Of a DNA stretch of 64,000 nucleotides, positions 16-13,083 are shown piece after piece. A model generated the notes under the pieces. It was not told where the DNA came from. It saw only the letters and a program-made list of their open reading frames with translations, and ran no database searches. Position numbers and translations under genes: made by a program. Every line of letters starts with the position of its first letter. The stretch's first letter is position 1. Location: IMG/VR virus record IMGVR_UViG_3300023184_000024, positions 124,001-188,000 of that record; one strand, given 5' to 3'.

Positions 16-210
16 ATGAAGCACAAGATGATCGTGCCACAACGTAACCCCTTCGTTGTGTTGGCACTAAAACGCAAAGCGGGTAGTCATCGCAAGAGCA
101 ACAAAGCTCTGCGTCGATGCGAAAAATCTAGGGATCGTGGTGAAGCGGTATCACAGCAGACTTTTAATCTGCCAATCCCGAGTTCGAATCTCGGCGGTCC
201 CACCATATAA
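16..210 (+). CDS. small basic protein whose reading frame runs through tRNA-Lys
   Basis: AAGGAG at 4-9, 6 nt before ATG; Lys/Arg-rich first 38 codons; no stop until 208-210, after the tRNA CCA. Confidence 0.55.
   Translation: MKHKMIVPQRNPFVVLALKRKAGSHRKSNKALRRCEKSRDRGEAVSQQTFNLPIPSSNLGGPTI
131..205 (+). tRNA. tRNA-Lys(TTT)
   Basis: cloverleaf, GCAGA-CT TTT AA-TCTGC, TTCGAAT loop, CCA. Confidence 0.95.
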
Positions 211-271
211 AAACACATTGGTGTTGGTTTAACAAATAAGTAAACCTAGTTATAGTGTGTTTCTATATGGT
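202..271 (+). repeat. inverted-repeat stem, copy 1 of AAACACAYT/AGTGTGTTT element
   Basis: ACCATATA-A-AAACACATT pairs with AGTGTGTTT-C-TATATGGT. Confidence 0.7.
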
Positions 272-277
272 AGAGTT

Positions 278-367
278 GGAACGGTCCCATAATGGTATTG
301 GAGCGGATTGCTAATCCGTCGAGTGGTGAAAGCCGCTTTCTGGGTTCAAGTCCCAGTCGTTCCGCCA
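278..367 (+). tRNA. tRNA-Ser(GCT)
   Basis: cloverleaf with long variable arm, anticodon GCT, G73, CCA. Confidence 0.95.
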
Positions 368-374
368 ACATTTT

Positions 375-450
375 GCCCTTATAGCTCAGTTGGTAGAGCA
401 CCTGATTTGTAATCAGGTTGTCCCGTGTTCGATTCATGGTGGGGGCACCA
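375..450 (+). tRNA. tRNA-Thr(TGT)
   Basis: CCTGA-TT TGT AA-TCAGG, CCA. Confidence 0.95.
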
Positions 451-457
451 AACATAT

Positions 458-533
458 TCTCTTATAGCTCAGTCGGTAGAGCAAGTGACTGTTAATCACT
501 AGGTCCGTGGTTCGAGCCCACGTAAGGGAGCCA
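458..533 (+). tRNA. tRNA-Asn(GTT)
   Basis: AGTGA-CT GTT AA-TCACT, CCA. Confidence 0.95.
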
Positions 534-541
534 ATTTCTTA

Positions 542-633
542 ACCTCGGTAGTTTAACGGTAAAACAGCGGATTTATATCCCGTGCGCAACAGATAATTGG
601 CCAATGTGGGTTCAACTCCCGCCCGAGGTACCA
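542..633 (+). tRNA. tRNA-Ile(TAT) with atypical 22-nt variable arm
   Basis: ACCTCGG/CCGAGGT acceptor, loop TT TAT AT, T arm GTGGG-TTCAACT-CCCGC, A73, CCA. Confidence 0.85.
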
Positions 634-10435: not shown

Positions 10436-10892
10436 CTTAGAAGAAGTTAAACGTTTCATTCAGGCCCAAGGTCCAGATACTAAAATTTATCTAGGTGCTG
10501 ACAGCGAGCGTTTTAAACTTGATAAAGTATGGTGGGCAGAATACACTGTGGCCATTGTGGTACACATCAACGGCAAGAATGGTTGTAAGATTTTTGGTGA
10601 GATATCCAAGGAACGTGACTATGATCAACGTGCAGACCGACCAAGCATGCGTTTAATGAACGAAGTTTATCGTGTCAGTGAAATGTTTCAACGCTTACAA
10701 GAAGCATTGGTTGACCGCAGTGTGGAAGTACATTTGGACATTAACCCCAATGAAATGCATGGATCGAGTTGTGTAATTCAACAGGCCATTGGATATATTC
10801 GCGGAACTTGCAATGTGATTCCAATGGTCAAACCCGATGCATTTGCCGCAAGCTACGCCGCAGATCGGTTGCGTAGTTTAAAAGTTGCTTAA
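10422..10892 (+). CDS. RNase H-like protein, YkuK/DUF458 family
   Basis: IYLGADS, EVHLDIN, KPDAFAASYAAD motifs; AAGGAG RBS. Confidence 0.8.
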   Translation: MSKLNLEEVKRFIQAQGPDTKIYLGADSERFKLDKVWWAEYTVAIVVHINGKNGCKIFGEISKERDYDQRADRPSMRLMNEVYRVSEMFQRLQEALVDRSVEVHLDINPNEMHGSSCVIQQAIGYIRGTCNVIPMVKPDAFAASYAADRLRSLKVA

Positions 10893-10905
10893 CTTGGAGA
10901 AAAAA

Positions 10906-11142
10906 ATGGCAAGAATTGTCAGTGAAGATGCTGTAAAAGCAGTGGAGAATCGATTCGATTTAGTTTTAATTGCGTCAAGACGAGTTCGAGAACTTCGTAA
11001 TGGATGGCAAAGGAAAGTAGACAGCGACAACGGTGATTTAGTCACTGCATTGCGTGAAATAGAGCAAGGATTGGTTGGTAGAGATTACTTACTTAAGCCC
11101 ACTGACATTGATCGGCGCAGGAAAAAAACTTCAGAGAAGTAA
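10906..11142 (+). CDS. rpoZ: RNA polymerase omega subunit homologue
   Basis: MARI..EDA...VENRFDLVLIASRR.REL, VTALREI signature. Confidence 0.9.
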   Translation: MARIVSEDAVKAVENRFDLVLIASRRVRELRNGWQRKVDSDNGDLVTALREIEQGLVGRDYLLKPTDIDRRRKKTSEK

Positions 11143-11215
11143 TTCAATAATAACTATATGATGAGTCAAATATAGGTCAAGTACATTGACCTATTACAAT
11201 TTTAAAGGAAAACAA

Positions 11216-12115
11216 ATGACAACAACAATCACAATCAAAGATAAAGCAGTAAACACCACATACCAAAATGTTACAGGATTAACAGGTGGTTCTGGAGATG
11301 GTGCCGTATTTGACGTTACAAAGACCAACGGGGTTTACTCTGTAGTTCTTGACAGTCTTGCCGCCAGCGCAGGACATGGCTATGTTGCCGGAGACACGAT
11401 CACTCTTGCTGGTACAGCATTGGGTGGCACAGTTACTAACAACTTAATCGTTACAGTAGCCACAGTTGGCACATCGGGTAAAATTGCTACGTTTGGCGTA
11501 GTAGGTACAGGTCGTGTCGGCGACGGCTCGGTTGATGTCACTGTAGATGTCACAGGCACCACAGGTGTTGACACATACACCATGGGTGGTGCTAGTACTG
11601 AATATACAATTACTAAGACTGCTGACAATGTAAAGTTAGCCAGCGGATTGGTTAGTAATATGGAATTCAACCTTGCTGATCATGAGCGTGTTGTGTTCAC
11701 GGACAAAGCTATTGCTTATGATGCCGCAGGTCGTGCAGGCGATGTGTATGCATTGTTGGCAGCCGCACTAGGTGTCGCTGATGTTACCAAAGCCTACACA
11801 GGTATTGGCATCGATCTTGCTGATAAAGGCTGGACAAATAAACAATTAGCAACAGCATTGTTGTCTACAGATGTTTACAAAACTGATGCTGGTGGTGTTA
11901 GTGATGAGACATTTATCAAGCACGTTTACAAGAATGTGTTTGGCACCGATGCTACACTAGCACAGGTCACAGACTACACAGCATGGATGACCAACAGCAA
12001 GTTGTCGCAGGCTGATGTGCTAGTTGCTGCCAGTGAGTTGTCTGCGTTTGAAACCACAATTGGCCTGGTTGGATTGGCAACCACTGGTATTGAGTATACT
12101 CCAGTAACAGTGTAA
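11216..12115 (+). CDS. Thr/Gly-rich surface protein with C-terminal DUF4214-like (S-layer-associated) domain
   Basis: ERVVFTDKAIAYD and SDETFIKHVYKNVFG motifs; AAAGGA RBS. Confidence 0.7.
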   Translation: MTTTITIKDKAVNTTYQNVTGLTGGSGDGAVFDVTKTNGVYSVVLDSLAASAGHGYVAGDTITLAGTALGGTVTNNLIVTVATVGTSGKIATFGVVGTGRVGDGSVDVTVDVTGTTGVDTYTMGGASTEYTITKTADNVKLASGLVSNMEFNLADHERVVFTDKAIAYDAAGRAGDVYALLAAALGVADVTKAYTGIGIDLADKGWTNKQLATALLSTDVYKTDAGGVSDETFIKHVYKNVFGTDATLAQVTDYTAWMTNSKLSQADVLVAASELSAFETTIGLVGLATTGIEYTPVTV

Positions 12116-12117
12116 CC

Positions 12118-12756
12118 TTGCCGGTACATTTAATCAATCCACTGCCGATATATCAAGAAGAGTCTGGCTATACTTTGTCAGACTCTGAATTATCGATACT
12201 CAACAATATCAAATATAACTCAGTGAGCAAGCCGTTTATCTGGGAATATGCATCAGAGTATACAATATTAGATCACCCTGGACTGGCAGATCTAAAGGCT
12301 GTATTACAACAGCACTTGGATAGGTATCGCAAAGAAATATGTGGTGTGGTTGATCAAGAGTTTTATATTACCAACAGTTGGTTAAGTAAAATCGAAGCTA
12401 TCCAAGGTAACTTATCTGAACATTCGCACGACAACAGTTTAATCAGTGGTGTGTTTTACATTGATGTCCCGCCCGACACTCCTTTGTGTTTTCGTAATCA
12501 TAGTCAGATTTTTAAAAAACATGATTTTTATTTTTCAAACAGTGTTGATACACAATACCGACAAGAAACATATTGTGTACCAGTAAAATCTGGAGACATT
12601 GTGCTATTCCCAAGTTGGGTAGATCATTACGTTGAAAAAAATCAAACAAGTCATGTTCGAAGAAGTTTGGCATTTGATAGTTTTGTTCGAGGGCTGTTTG
12701 ATGGTAAAATGTTGCACAACGATAAAACTGGTTTTAGTACGCTAATGATTAAATAA
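12118..12756 (+). CDS. putative 2OG-Fe(II) oxygenase (TIGR02466-like)
   Basis: HSH.NS.ISGVFY, GDIVLFPSWVDHYV, RRSLAF motifs. Confidence 0.8.
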   Translation: MPVHLINPLPIYQEESGYTLSDSELSILNNIKYNSVSKPFIWEYASEYTILDHPGLADLKAVLQQHLDRYRKEICGVVDQEFYITNSWLSKIEAIQGNLSEHSHDNSLISGVFYIDVPPDTPLCFRNHSQIFKKHDFYFSNSVDTQYRQETYCVPVKSGDIVLFPSWVDHYVEKNQTSHVRRSLAFDSFVRGLFDGKMLHNDKTGFSTLMIK

Positions 12757-12760
12757 AAGT

Positions 12761-13083
12761 TAAGACTGTATGAAGTAGAGAGAAAAGGATTCAAGACGCG
12801 GGGGCAGTGCCCGCCAGGTCCACCAAAAACACACTGCCAGTCGCGCTGGTTGTATGGTACTATTCTAGAAATAAGGTTCGAATCCTTAGTGTGTTTTTGA
12901 TGGGCCTGACACAGGATCGATTGGGTCAAGAGTATTGAAATGGACAGTCCGGCAATGTAGAAGCCGTTAGGGTTGGGGGAACTCGGCCGAAGACACAAAA
13001 ACCGTAAATGCAAACGACGAACAGTTCGCTTTAGCCGCCTAAACTCGGCTTAGGGTAGGAAATACCTCGTAACAGAAACCACC
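12761..13083 (+). ncRNA. ssrA: two-piece (circularly permuted) tmRNA
   Basis: acceptor piece ends ...GCGGG-GGCAGTG-CCCGC-CAGGTCC-ACCA (12825) before the coding piece starting GGGCCTG (12902); G3:U70; tag ANDEQFALAA* at 13010-13042; 5' end approximate. Confidence 0.92.

Follow-up and report, generated by a model that had tools for sequence, protein, structure and literature searches.

We found that four long stems in a 64,000-nucleotide stretch of DNA from a complete 352,754-bp lake-water jumbo phage (the whole stretch is referred to here as the window) belong to a large and apparently undescribed family of CCA-anchored phage RNA hairpins; a literature search found no paper describing the motif. 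Comparative sequence data support the view that the conserved helix acts as RNA, at RNA ends that must be made, and we give an even chance to the proposal that the stems function in RNA as leader-trailer processing stalks of polycistronic precursors containing tRNAs, small RNAs and tmRNA. Such stalks would join ordinary tRNAs, a permuted tmRNA and unannotated small RNAs in one processing logic. The stems and the features around them are as follows.

131..205, + strand: tRNA-Lys(UUU), whose ACCA end (202-205) is the base of the site 1 stem
202..271, + strand: site 1, a canonical element with arms 202-219 (ACCATATAAAAACACATT) and 254-271 (AGTGTGTTTCTATATGGT) and insert 220-253
278 (start): tRNA-Ser, just 3' of site 1
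2828-2856 and 2926-2954: promoter-like sites preceding site 2
3030..3274, + strand: site 2, a divergent member with arms 3030-3051 and 3253-3274 and insert 3052-3252 (201 nt)
3818-4011: conserved non-tRNA RNA upstream of site 3
4011..4085, + strand: site 3, arms 4011-4032 and 4064-4085, a fully paired 22-bp stem with the variant UAUUGAAGCACA/UGUGUUUCAAUA
4090 (start): tRNA-Cys, just 3' of site 3
10422..10892, + strand: YkuK-like protein of predicted RNase H-like fold (PF04308), a candidate phage nuclease within the same arrays
12708..13133, + strand: permuted (two-piece, beta-type) tmRNA gene, containing site 4
12815..12908, + strand: site 4, arms 12815-12835 and 12888-12908, with the motif stem AAAACACACU/AGUGUGUUUU

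The initial annotation of this DNA had described one helix reused four times around unrelated inserts. All four stems are present where it placed them, the four inserts show no mutual relation, and the comparative data described below agree with reuse of a single helix. When inverted repeats in the first 14 kb are ranked by length, the sites fill four of the top six places, and their folding was 4.3 to 5.2 standard deviations better than that of dinucleotide shuffles, with none of 200 shuffles as good. The bare 9-mer is weakly above chance (10 found versus 3.97 expected), and a relaxed genome-wide search returned many core pairs, of which those at the four sites alone had complementary flanks. 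Two copies begin within a CCA end, as had also been noted: the 5' arm of site 1 takes in the discriminator and CCA of tRNA-Lys(UUU), and site 4 begins in the acceptor piece of the tmRNA (CCA at 12823-12825). Pairing around the mismatches amounts to 8+10 pairs at site 1 (A.C) and 8+16 at site 4 (C.A). Sites 2 and 3 do not follow a tRNA, and their CCA positions show compensated variants. At site 2, which has 9+8+3 pairs and two mismatches, the A.C mismatch of the family is replaced by U.U, and the closing pairs ACUA/UAGU in place of ACCA/UGGU represent a compensatory change; the promoter-like sites lie upstream, with no tRNA. At site 3 the 22 pairs are continuous, and the closing pairs AGCA/UGCU represent a compensatory flip at the CCA position. 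Matches from two metatranscriptomes and two metagenomes consisted mostly of tRNA pieces from other organisms; two metatranscriptome contigs end at 4016/4017, just within the stem of site 3, an observation too weak to use.

A promoter or terminator reading of the stems was rejected. One promoter-like match lies within site 1 (229-256), and none of the 15 sites resembling intrinsic terminators falls at the four stems; a UUUUU tract follows the stem at site 3 only.

We trained a covariance model, R1, on 64 IMG/VR elements from other phages only, leaving out the sites in the window. R1 recovered three of them, with scores of 61.9 bits for site 1 (E = 1.8e-12), 47.2 bits for site 3 (E = 6e-9) and 26.6 bits for site 4 (E = 5e-4); all three scored higher on the + (tRNA) strand than on the - strand. 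Site 2 was missed because of its 201-nt insert; judged by eye from the same layout, it is a divergent family member. Read on the tRNA strand, the layout is an 18-bp stem, ACCAUAUAAAAACACAUU / AGUGUGUUUCUAUAUGGU, with a variable insert between the arms, and the consensus is ACCAUAUA(A)AAACACA(U)U ... A(G)UGUGUUU(C)UAUAUGGU. A scan of other phages, which the initial annotation had proposed as a check, bore the motif out: an exact 23-base pattern occurs in at least 120 IMG/VR contigs, nearly all palindromic among the matches listed, whereas 596 Gb of prokaryote genomes gave 12 stretches with the same pattern, palindromic at just 3 loci (on 2 MAG contigs). The carriers are a large group of mainly freshwater phages, and the arms hardly vary from phage to phage, even where the inserts are unrelated, and are almost absent from bacteria. 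Comparison of the element with cultured phages by blastn gave no match, the 18-base arms being too short for blastn statistics, and a megablast search of window positions 1-6000 against cultured phages returned tRNAs only. The radical-SAM protein encoded at 6452-8011, used as a query, found no relatives in IMG/VR.

Orientation relative to tRNAs is fixed, with no exception, and nearly every match scores higher on the + strand. Among 178 copies read on the tRNA strand, 115 (65%) share their CCA with the upstream tRNA, and in 49 (28%) the element ends at position -1 or 0 relative to the 5' end of the tRNA that follows; read on the opposite strand, none of the 178 fits a tRNA. The ACCA always lies within the helix, and the 3' arm terminates in UGG(U), often corresponding to U(-1), G1 and G2 of the next tRNA. 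Since the 5' arm begins with the discriminator and CCA and the 3' arm ends in UGG(U), the helix of about 18 bp joins the 3' end of an upstream product to the 5' end of the one that follows. No annotated tRNA lies upstream of 35% of the canonical copies, which resemble sites 2 and 3 in this respect; promoters, other small RNAs or other hairpins are found there instead. Stems anchored on the discriminator follow 195 of 3164 tRNAs, compared with 2 of 3164 when the arms were shuffled, and many of these stem sequences are unrelated to one another.

The pattern of substitution points to selection on RNA. Paired cells make up 94.6% of the alignment, compared with 30-61% when the partner columns were slid, and we counted 28 double changes against 12.2 +/- 2.0 in shuffles, with none of 500 shuffles reaching 28. 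Two positions are special among the 159 copies: stem position 8 is A.C in 96, G-C in 30 and A-U in 22, and position 16 is U.G in 106, C-G in 31 and U-A in 21. Outside these two positions, G.U outnumbers A.C by 82 to 23 on the tRNA strand, under strand-symmetric detection. Stem sequences thus drift while pairing is retained, and from this drift, together with the excess of G.U over A.C on the tRNA strand, we conclude that selection acts on the RNA.

The inserts are diverse: the 159 copies hold 93 insert clusters, many of them structured and conserved, with inserts as short as 29 nt. In 14 of the 29 multi-member clusters one insert stands behind different tRNA species, and one and the same insert is also found inside different stems. 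The insert of site 2 (about 200 nt) is a conserved RNA that is closed by covarying stems in other phages. This diversity, with inserts shared between tRNAs and between stems, is consistent with the earlier suggestion of a general cassette for releasing small RNAs. We considered whether inserts are hidden tRNAs and rejected this; T-arm-like hairpins are real (6 of 159 inserts versus 0.1 expected), yet they occur in a minority only. A role as antisense guides against the phage's own genome was also rejected, since the best matches were no better than those of shuffled inserts; the matches of the site 4 insert in its own genome are tRNA T-arms.

Site 4 lies in a permuted tmRNA gene that ARAGORN reports as tmRNA* at 12733-13133 and that matches the Rfam families tmRNA_permuted (111.3 bits) and beta_tmRNA (84 bits). 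The acceptor stem, 12815-12821 paired with 12902-12908 (G3.U70), is followed by ACCA/UGAU and then by the motif stem, so that the site runs from the CCA of the acceptor piece into the 5' end of the tmRNA (G at 12902). Site 4 is thus the intervening segment, 12826-12901, between the acceptor-piece CCA and the 5' end of the coding piece; a T-arm-like hairpin lies inside it (12874-12888). A two-piece tmRNA needs its spacer to be removed (PMC11915505). In all nine permuted phage tmRNAs with a readable spacer, a long stem extends the acceptor stem, with sequences that differ, and the AAACACA motif occurs in 2 of 10 unique permuted tmRNA genes, one of the ten spacers not having been read.

If the stems act as processing stalks, a double-strand-specific endoribonuclease would open the stalk, the downstream leader would be trimmed by RNase P, 3' exonucleases would shorten the upstream product back to its CCA, and the insert would be freed as a hairpin-capped small RNA or discarded. 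We infer the cleavage itself, its position and the enzyme; host RNase III is the most likely putative nuclease, on the basis of stem length and analogy. The likeness to the E. coli pre-16S stem put forward in the initial annotation would concern a run of five bases. In length, the stems are adequate for the approximately two helical turns of double-stranded RNA that RNase III needs, but such a length is not specific to this enzyme. Neither an RNase III nor a CCA-adding enzyme is encoded in the complete phage genome, and a cut of the RNase III type would therefore need the host enzyme. RNase III requires no conserved sequence, although the arms are near-invariant and almost absent from bacteria, which speaks for a reader specific to phages or for concerted evolution. 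In addition, a paired ACCA and a paired leader should hinder, rather than help, RNase P and 3' exonucleases.

A phage-specific reader could be the YkuK-like protein, which would recognize the stalk and cleave at the CCA-anchored stem or close to it, or act on the precursors in some other way; we consider this unlikely. Besides the conservation of the arms across phages and their near absence from bacteria, 11 of 18 large contigs with the element also carry a PF04308 gene, which in every case lies in the tRNA array or no more than 5 kb from it. The protein's relatives in IMG/VR number 270, at 67-81% identity, and tRNAs are present at 79 of 80 YkuK loci, with the gene in or adjoining the array; an R1 match on the same strand as the gene is present at 46 of the 80. 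In Stenotrophomonas phage DLP6, a YkuK-like gene lies 29 nt after tRNA-Lys(UUU), and the protein has invariant acidic residues and a predicted RNase H-like fold (PMC3985635). However, no R1 match is present at 34 of the 80 loci, several with more than 20 tRNAs, and a 100% complete 364-kb phage has the element and no PF04308 match. The link is therefore not obligatory: the gene of the YkuK-like protein, which the initial annotation proposed as an alternative nuclease, does lie in or next to tRNA arrays, but gene and element do not require each other. Gene and element both track the tRNA arrays of related phages, and their co-occurrence may therefore reflect shared descent; moreover, the usual substrates of RNase H-type enzymes are RNA-DNA hybrids.

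The choice of tRNA raises another alternative. In a sample of YkuK-selected loci that was blind to the motif, a CCA-anchored stem lay 3' of 20 of 41 tRNA-Lys(UUU), 19 of 53 tRNA-Glu(UUC) and 12 of 50 tRNA-Gln(UUG) genes. Together, these three species carry the stem in 51 of 144 cases, compared with 13 of 1303 for all other tRNAs (odds ratio, 54), and the bias spans 37 (Lys), 12 (Glu) and 16 (Gln) different insert clusters and several unrelated stem sequences. In bacteria, these are the three tRNAs whose wobble uridine is 2-thiolated. We inspected the arms for variants that track the upstream anticodon and rejected this idea, UAAAA and UGAAA both following Lys, Glu and Gln alike. A plain processing role accounts for neither the three-tRNA bias nor the conserved A.C mismatch, and the association with exactly these species is an unexplained feature of the family. 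The helix might instead be chiefly a cis-acting cap rather than a cut site, sequestering the ACCA of the three tRNAs and so delaying charging, protecting the 3' end against exonucleases or against toxins that modify it, or keeping a reserve of precursor during tRNA-targeted host defense. The bias, its spread over many inserts and stems and the constant inclusion of ACCA in the helix favor such a cap, and phage tRNAs are established counter-measures to anticodon nucleases (PMC10264068). We nevertheless find it a doubtful explanation: no annotated tRNA precedes 35% of the canonical copies, the tmRNA spacer must be removed, and no defense system is linked to the element here. A tRNA with a blocked CCA is not chargeable, and the cap must therefore be cut off anyway. 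A bolder combination, in which the stalk marks the three wobble-2-thiouridine tRNAs and the phage's own tmRNA for recognition by a dedicated phage pathway, run by the YkuK-like nuclease and countering host tRNA-targeting immunity, with the inserts as a library of small effector or decoy RNAs, would be speculative and seems to us rather improbable.

It is quite improbable that the element works at the DNA level, as a miniature mobile element or the boundary of a recombination cassette whose inverted ends, read as DNA or as a single-stranded hairpin, shuffle inserts and tRNA genes. In its favor, the inverted arms are conserved although imperfect, most copies show the same two asymmetries, and the motif is confined to phages; the same insert stands behind different tRNA species, and one contig, seen in an RNA run and in a DNA run, joins the arms of site 2 around other sequence. 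Fixed orientation, the excess of G.U over A.C on the transcribed strand and compensatory drift of the stems all argue against this reading, as do the inserts, which are unrelated rather than copies of one element. As for transposon or MITE ends, we found no duplication beyond the palindrome, 93 clusters among 159 copies and an invariant orientation; no link to a transposase or integrase was seen (for integrase, among the open reading frames of positions 1-14500), and the integron attC core (RYYYAAC / GTTRRRY) is absent from the consensus arms. Identical arms would in any case promote ordinary homologous exchange without dedicated machinery. A self-cleaving ribozyme for removal of the tRNA 3' trailer, like the theta (HDV-like) ribozymes that occupy the same place immediately 3' of tRNAs in gut phages (PMC10879173), is very improbable despite the conserved nucleotides and mismatch, as conservation is confined to a single plain helix, the inserts have neither sequence nor fold in common, those of 29 nt could not form a double pseudoknot, and Rfam ribozyme families gave no match to window positions 1-14000 at E values up to 1.

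The processing-stalk proposal would place a conserved and easily recognized RNA module, with hundreds of natural variants, at the joints of precursors and presumably at their cut sites. To our knowledge, the processing of phage tRNA arrays is almost unknown outside T4, and these arrays are now regarded as weapons against host tRNA-cleaving defenses. Features that go beyond the initial annotation are the size of the family, its confinement to phages, its fixed orientation, the conserved A.C mismatch and the bias to Lys(UUU), Glu(UUC) and Gln(UUG). The widespread protein family DUF458/YkuK gains a candidate role, which would be its first function if the YkuK-run pathway were true. Divergent members in a cultured phage of Synechococcus elongatus PCC 7942 offer a tractable system, and R1 flags many small non-tRNA RNAs that are missed by current annotation pipelines.

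Among known systems, the family resembles the leader-trailer stems of rRNA operons and the RNase III sites of phage T7 in that a long helix forms from the flanks of a stable RNA in a polycistronic precursor. In both, mature ends lie at the base of the helix, and other enzymes do, or in the phage case would do, the final trimming. Unlike those stems, the phage helix encloses a small variable RNA, with the wanted tRNAs or tmRNA pieces outside; it includes the CCA, it has a conserved sequence that phages share and hosts lack, and its cleavage is putative. Murine gammaherpesvirus 68, in which a tRNA-like RNA is followed by pre-miRNA hairpins and RNase Z and Dicer are used, likewise puts hairpins directly behind tRNA-type structures for release by tRNA processing enzymes; however, this is a eukaryotic virus, with no pairing of the CCA and no sequence in common with the phage family. 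MITEs and integron attC sites also have conserved imperfect inverted ends around variable content, in contrast to which the phage element has a fixed orientation, a strand-specific wobble bias and unrelated inserts, and lacks target duplication and an attC core. Theta (HDV-like) ribozymes, too, are structured RNAs positioned directly behind phage tRNA genes, with a proposed role in tRNA 3' end formation (PMC10879173), whereas the present hairpins pair the CCA, enclose a variable insert and have neither a ribozyme core nor an Rfam match. Finally, site 4 occupies exactly the place of the intervening segment of permuted tmRNA (PMC11915505); the spacers of phage permuted tmRNAs differ in that a long stem continues the acceptor stem, and 2 of 10 share their sequence with the hairpins behind ordinary tRNAs.

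The initial annotation had described one stem motif reused four times around unrelated inserts, and this observation is confirmed and greatly extended here. The stems are present at the following places in the window:

202-271 (+), site 1, stem starting at the discriminator and CCA of tRNA-Lys(UUU)
3030-3274 (+), site 2, stem with no tRNA upstream
4011-4085 (+), site 3, stem with no tRNA upstream
12815-12908 (+), site 4, acceptor stem and intervening segment of the permuted tmRNA, the latter directly 3' of the acceptor-piece CCA (12823-25)

Of the six longest inverted repeats in 14 kb, four are these stems, which fold 4.3 to 5.2 standard deviations better than shuffled sequences, and a relaxed genome-wide search found complementary flanks at only these four core pairs. 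The inserts are indeed unrelated to one another, and sites 1 and 4 abut CCA ends as proposed. Site 4 runs from the acceptor strand CAGGUCC (12815-21) through A, CCA and AAAACACACU ... AGUGUGUUUUUGAU to GGGCCUG (12902-08), which closes the tmRNA acceptor stem with CAGGUCC, including G3.U70. At sites 2 and 3, ACUA/UAGU and AGCA/UGCU replace ACCA/UGGU, and these variants are compensatory changes at the CCA positions. A covariance model (R1), built like alignment A1 from 64 of the IMG/VR elements, none of them from the window, found sites 1, 3 and 4. No complementarity of the window inserts to the phage genome was above chance.

A scan of IMG/VR showed that the stems belong to a large family of phage elements, with at least 120 contigs matching AAACACAYT-N20-50-ARTGTGTTTYNATATG. 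Nearly all of the matches listed were hit from both strands, offset by 7 bases, indicating that the full palindrome is CCATAT..AAACACAYT ... ARTGTGTTT..ATATGG. The same pattern matched 12 stretches in 596 Gb of prokaryote genomes: nine were one-strand, chance-type matches, and three were palindromic, on two short MAG contigs. Allowing at most three changes per arm, we counted 178 copies, 159 of them unique, from 121 sources, and nearly all family loci were phage tRNA arrays, both among the matches listed. A search of window 1-14000 against Rfam returned no family for the motif, and no published description of the motif was found in the literature.

When the 178 copies among the matches listed are read on the strand of the tRNAs, 115 start at the CCA of an annotated tRNA. 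Likewise among the matches listed, 49 of 178 end at position -1 or 0 of the following tRNA, and the closing G's are therefore that tRNA's own G1 and G2. Having an encoded CCA does not set the hairpin sites apart, since 98% of the tRNAs in element-bearing arrays have one. Copies without an annotated upstream tRNA still start with CCA-like closing pairs and are preceded by other ACCA-ending small RNAs, tandem hairpins or promoter-like sequences. Tandem canonical hairpins were seen in L024 (12030-12192), L034, L061, L073 and L116, the second beginning 2 to 3 nt past the first with UUAUAU or CUAUAU instead of CCAUAU. Orientation is invariant across the 159 unique copies, in which stem position 8 is A.C in 96, G-C in 30 and A-U in 22, and stem position 16 is U.G in 106, C-G in 31 and U-A in 21.

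Ten unique permuted tmRNA genes were found in the collected phage loci and the window, and in 9 of the 9 with a readable spacer the spacer is a long stem extending the acceptor stem, with ACCA paired to UGAU or UAAU. The spacer stems vary in sequence (AAAGCAUAC, AAAGAGAAU, GAAAGAAUUC and others); the AAACACA stem serves as spacer in the window and in L008, and the spacer insert of L162 is the same as the canonical-element insert of L093 and L099, in a different stem. Removal of the spacer is required for a two-piece tmRNA (PMC11915505), and the stem thus marks excised RNA; this gives the strongest reason to take the tRNA-linked copies for processing stalks as well. The most likely overall reading, to which we give an even chance, is that the stems are an RNA processing stalk, or a small-RNA cassette, of phage tRNA arrays.

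The source virus record is complete (352,754 bp, direct terminal repeats, 42% G+C); the window spans its bases 124001-188000, and the sequence is nearly confined to lake and freshwater metagenomes. The first 13 kb of the window hold 27 tRNA genes plus a permuted tmRNA of the beta type, every one of them on the plus strand, interspersed with protein genes that include a D-Ala-D-Ala carboxypeptidase and the following:

Window 732-1337, calcineurin-like phosphoesterase (metallophosphoesterase) gene, embedded among tRNAs
Window 6452-8011, B12-binding radical-SAM protein gene, embedded among tRNAs
Window 9033-9764, weak methyltransferase match, embedded among tRNAs
Window 10422-10892, YkuK-like protein gene (DUF458, PF04308)

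The phosphoesterase, radical-SAM and methyltransferase-match genes could act in RNA repair or tRNA modification. ARAGORN reported a tRNA-Ile with anticodon UAU of 90-95 nt at window 542-633 and in many related arrays, where it usually adjoins tRNA-Ser(GCU); this is the size of a long-variable-arm tRNA and is unusual for isoleucine.

The initial annotation had likened the stems to RNase III sites and named the YkuK-like protein as an alternative nuclease. Neither an RNase III gene nor a CCA-adding enzyme gene was found in the complete phage genome. The likeliest candidate for cutting the stalks is host RNase III. The rival, that a phage YkuK-type enzyme reads the stalk, draws on a protein with 270 IMG/VR relatives (67-81% identity), invariant residues D27, E60, E102, D106 and D148, and a model with an RNase H-like fold, in agreement with PMC3985635, that weakly resembles RNase H1, endonuclease V and PIWI. 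Its gene lies inside a tRNA array or at most 5 kb away in 11 of the 11 large contigs having it, and tRNAs occur in 79 of the 80 loci found through the protein (L121-L200; at least five tRNAs in 71). The gene also lies at L213 8989-9471, in cultured phages with many tRNAs, and in cultured phages of Stenotrophomonas, Synechococcus, the Roseobacter group, Xanthomonas and Vibrio; in phage DLP6, 29 nt separate tRNA-Lys(UUU) from its start. Such a gene is characteristic of tRNA arrays in phages, but 34 of the 80 loci have no R1 match and the element occurs in a complete 364-kb phage that lacks the gene, leaving the link between protein and element suggestive.

Under a second rival, three tRNA species would be protected by the stem acting as a cap. 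Among the matches listed, 56 of the 115 canonical copies with an upstream tRNA lie behind Lys-UUU, 20 behind Gln-UUG and 13 behind Glu-UUC. In a motif-blind sample, of loci picked through the YkuK-like protein, anchored stems follow 20 of 41 Lys-UUU, 19 of 53 Glu-UUC and 12 of 50 Gln-UUG tRNAs, and 13 of 1303 of all others (odds ratio 54, p 4e-43, uncorrected for kinship). In bacteria, it is these three tRNAs that carry a 5-substituted 2-thiouridine in the wobble position. The bias extends over many insert clusters and stem classes, and none of the explanations tested accounts for it.

The inserts are diverse, forming 93 clusters among 159 copies (among the matches listed), and 14 of the 29 multi-member clusters lie behind at least two tRNA species. 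Several insert families carry internal compensatory changes. The site 2 insert (window 3052-3252, 201 nt) is a conserved structured RNA found at 11 loci, 89% identical in L165; its closing stem is canonical-like in some phages, and elsewhere it sits inside a GAUUUAAUUGCA stem directly 3' of tRNA-Glu(UUC). One contig, from an RNA run and a DNA run, joins the site 2 arms (3043-3258) with the intervening 214 nt skipped or replaced, which suggests a relative with the same stem and another insert or none. Upstream of site 2 are two strong sigma-70-like promoters, 98 bp apart (2828-2856, TTGACC-17-TATAAT; 2926-2954, TTGACC-17-TATACT), and after each comes a palindromic box, the two being near-identical (AGTTAAGAAATTAACT / AGTTAGAAATTAACT); the boxes look like an operator pair. 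T-arm-like hairpins are enriched yet rare (6 of 159 inserts versus 0.1 expected). A perfect one, UAAGG UUCGAAU CCUUA (12874-12888), lies in the tmRNA intervening segment directly 5' of the 3' arm; taken together with the stem's inner 7 bp, it looks like the upper half of a tRNA.

Further RNAs occupy the same array. Just 5' of site 3, positions 3818-4011 hold a conserved RNA, some 190 nt long and not a tRNA, with 34 related loci (at most 96% identity) and high depth in DNA and RNA runs; it matched no Rfam family, the sole match being a weak tmRNA_permuted hit (23.4 bits, E 0.21). Three more stretches, at window positions 3281-3416, 3493-3652 and 4341-4554, are intergenic between tRNAs, conserved in 12-14 related phage arrays and without a match in Rfam; the first has a closing 26-nt inverted repeat of its own. 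They look like additional unannotated small RNAs.

A third rival is that the stem is a DNA-level cassette, and the pairing and strand evidence speaks against it. In alignment A1, 94.6% of cells are paired versus 30-61% with the partner columns slid, and double changes number 28 versus 12.2 +/- 2.0 in shuffles. A generic stem test, in which 16 bases from the discriminator had to form at least 15 pairs with a stretch lying 20-314 nt further 3', was passed at 195 of 3164 tRNAs versus 2 of 3164 with shuffled arms, and many of these anchored stems differ in sequence (e.g., ACCAUUUGUUUUGCUG/CAGCAAAACAAAUGGU and ACCAGAUUUAAUUGCA/UGUAAUUAAAUGUGGU). Under a strand-symmetric detection rule treating G.U and A.C alike, non-Watson-Crick cells were G.U in 133 and A.C in 59, or 82 and 23 once positions 9 and 17 from the discriminator (stem positions 8 and 16) were left out. 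This excess indicates that the transcribed tRNA strand is the one kept paired. At position 9, 36 of 39 non-Watson-Crick cases are A.C, so the mismatch is itself a conserved feature. Selection therefore acts on an RNA helix.

Divergent members of the family occur in a cultured phage, Synechococcus phage BUCT-ZZ01 (ON615601.1), which infects S. elongatus PCC 7942; its stems lie at L214 1557-1696, 4957-5180 and 10974-11098. One (ACCAUAUUAAAGCAUGCU/AGCAUGCUUUAAUAUGGU) adjoins its permuted tmRNA, two hairpins lie between tRNA-Lys(UUU) and tRNA-Met, and one precedes tRNA-Ile. Among such distant members, the best-kept part is the stem base, ACCAUAU/AUAUGGU.
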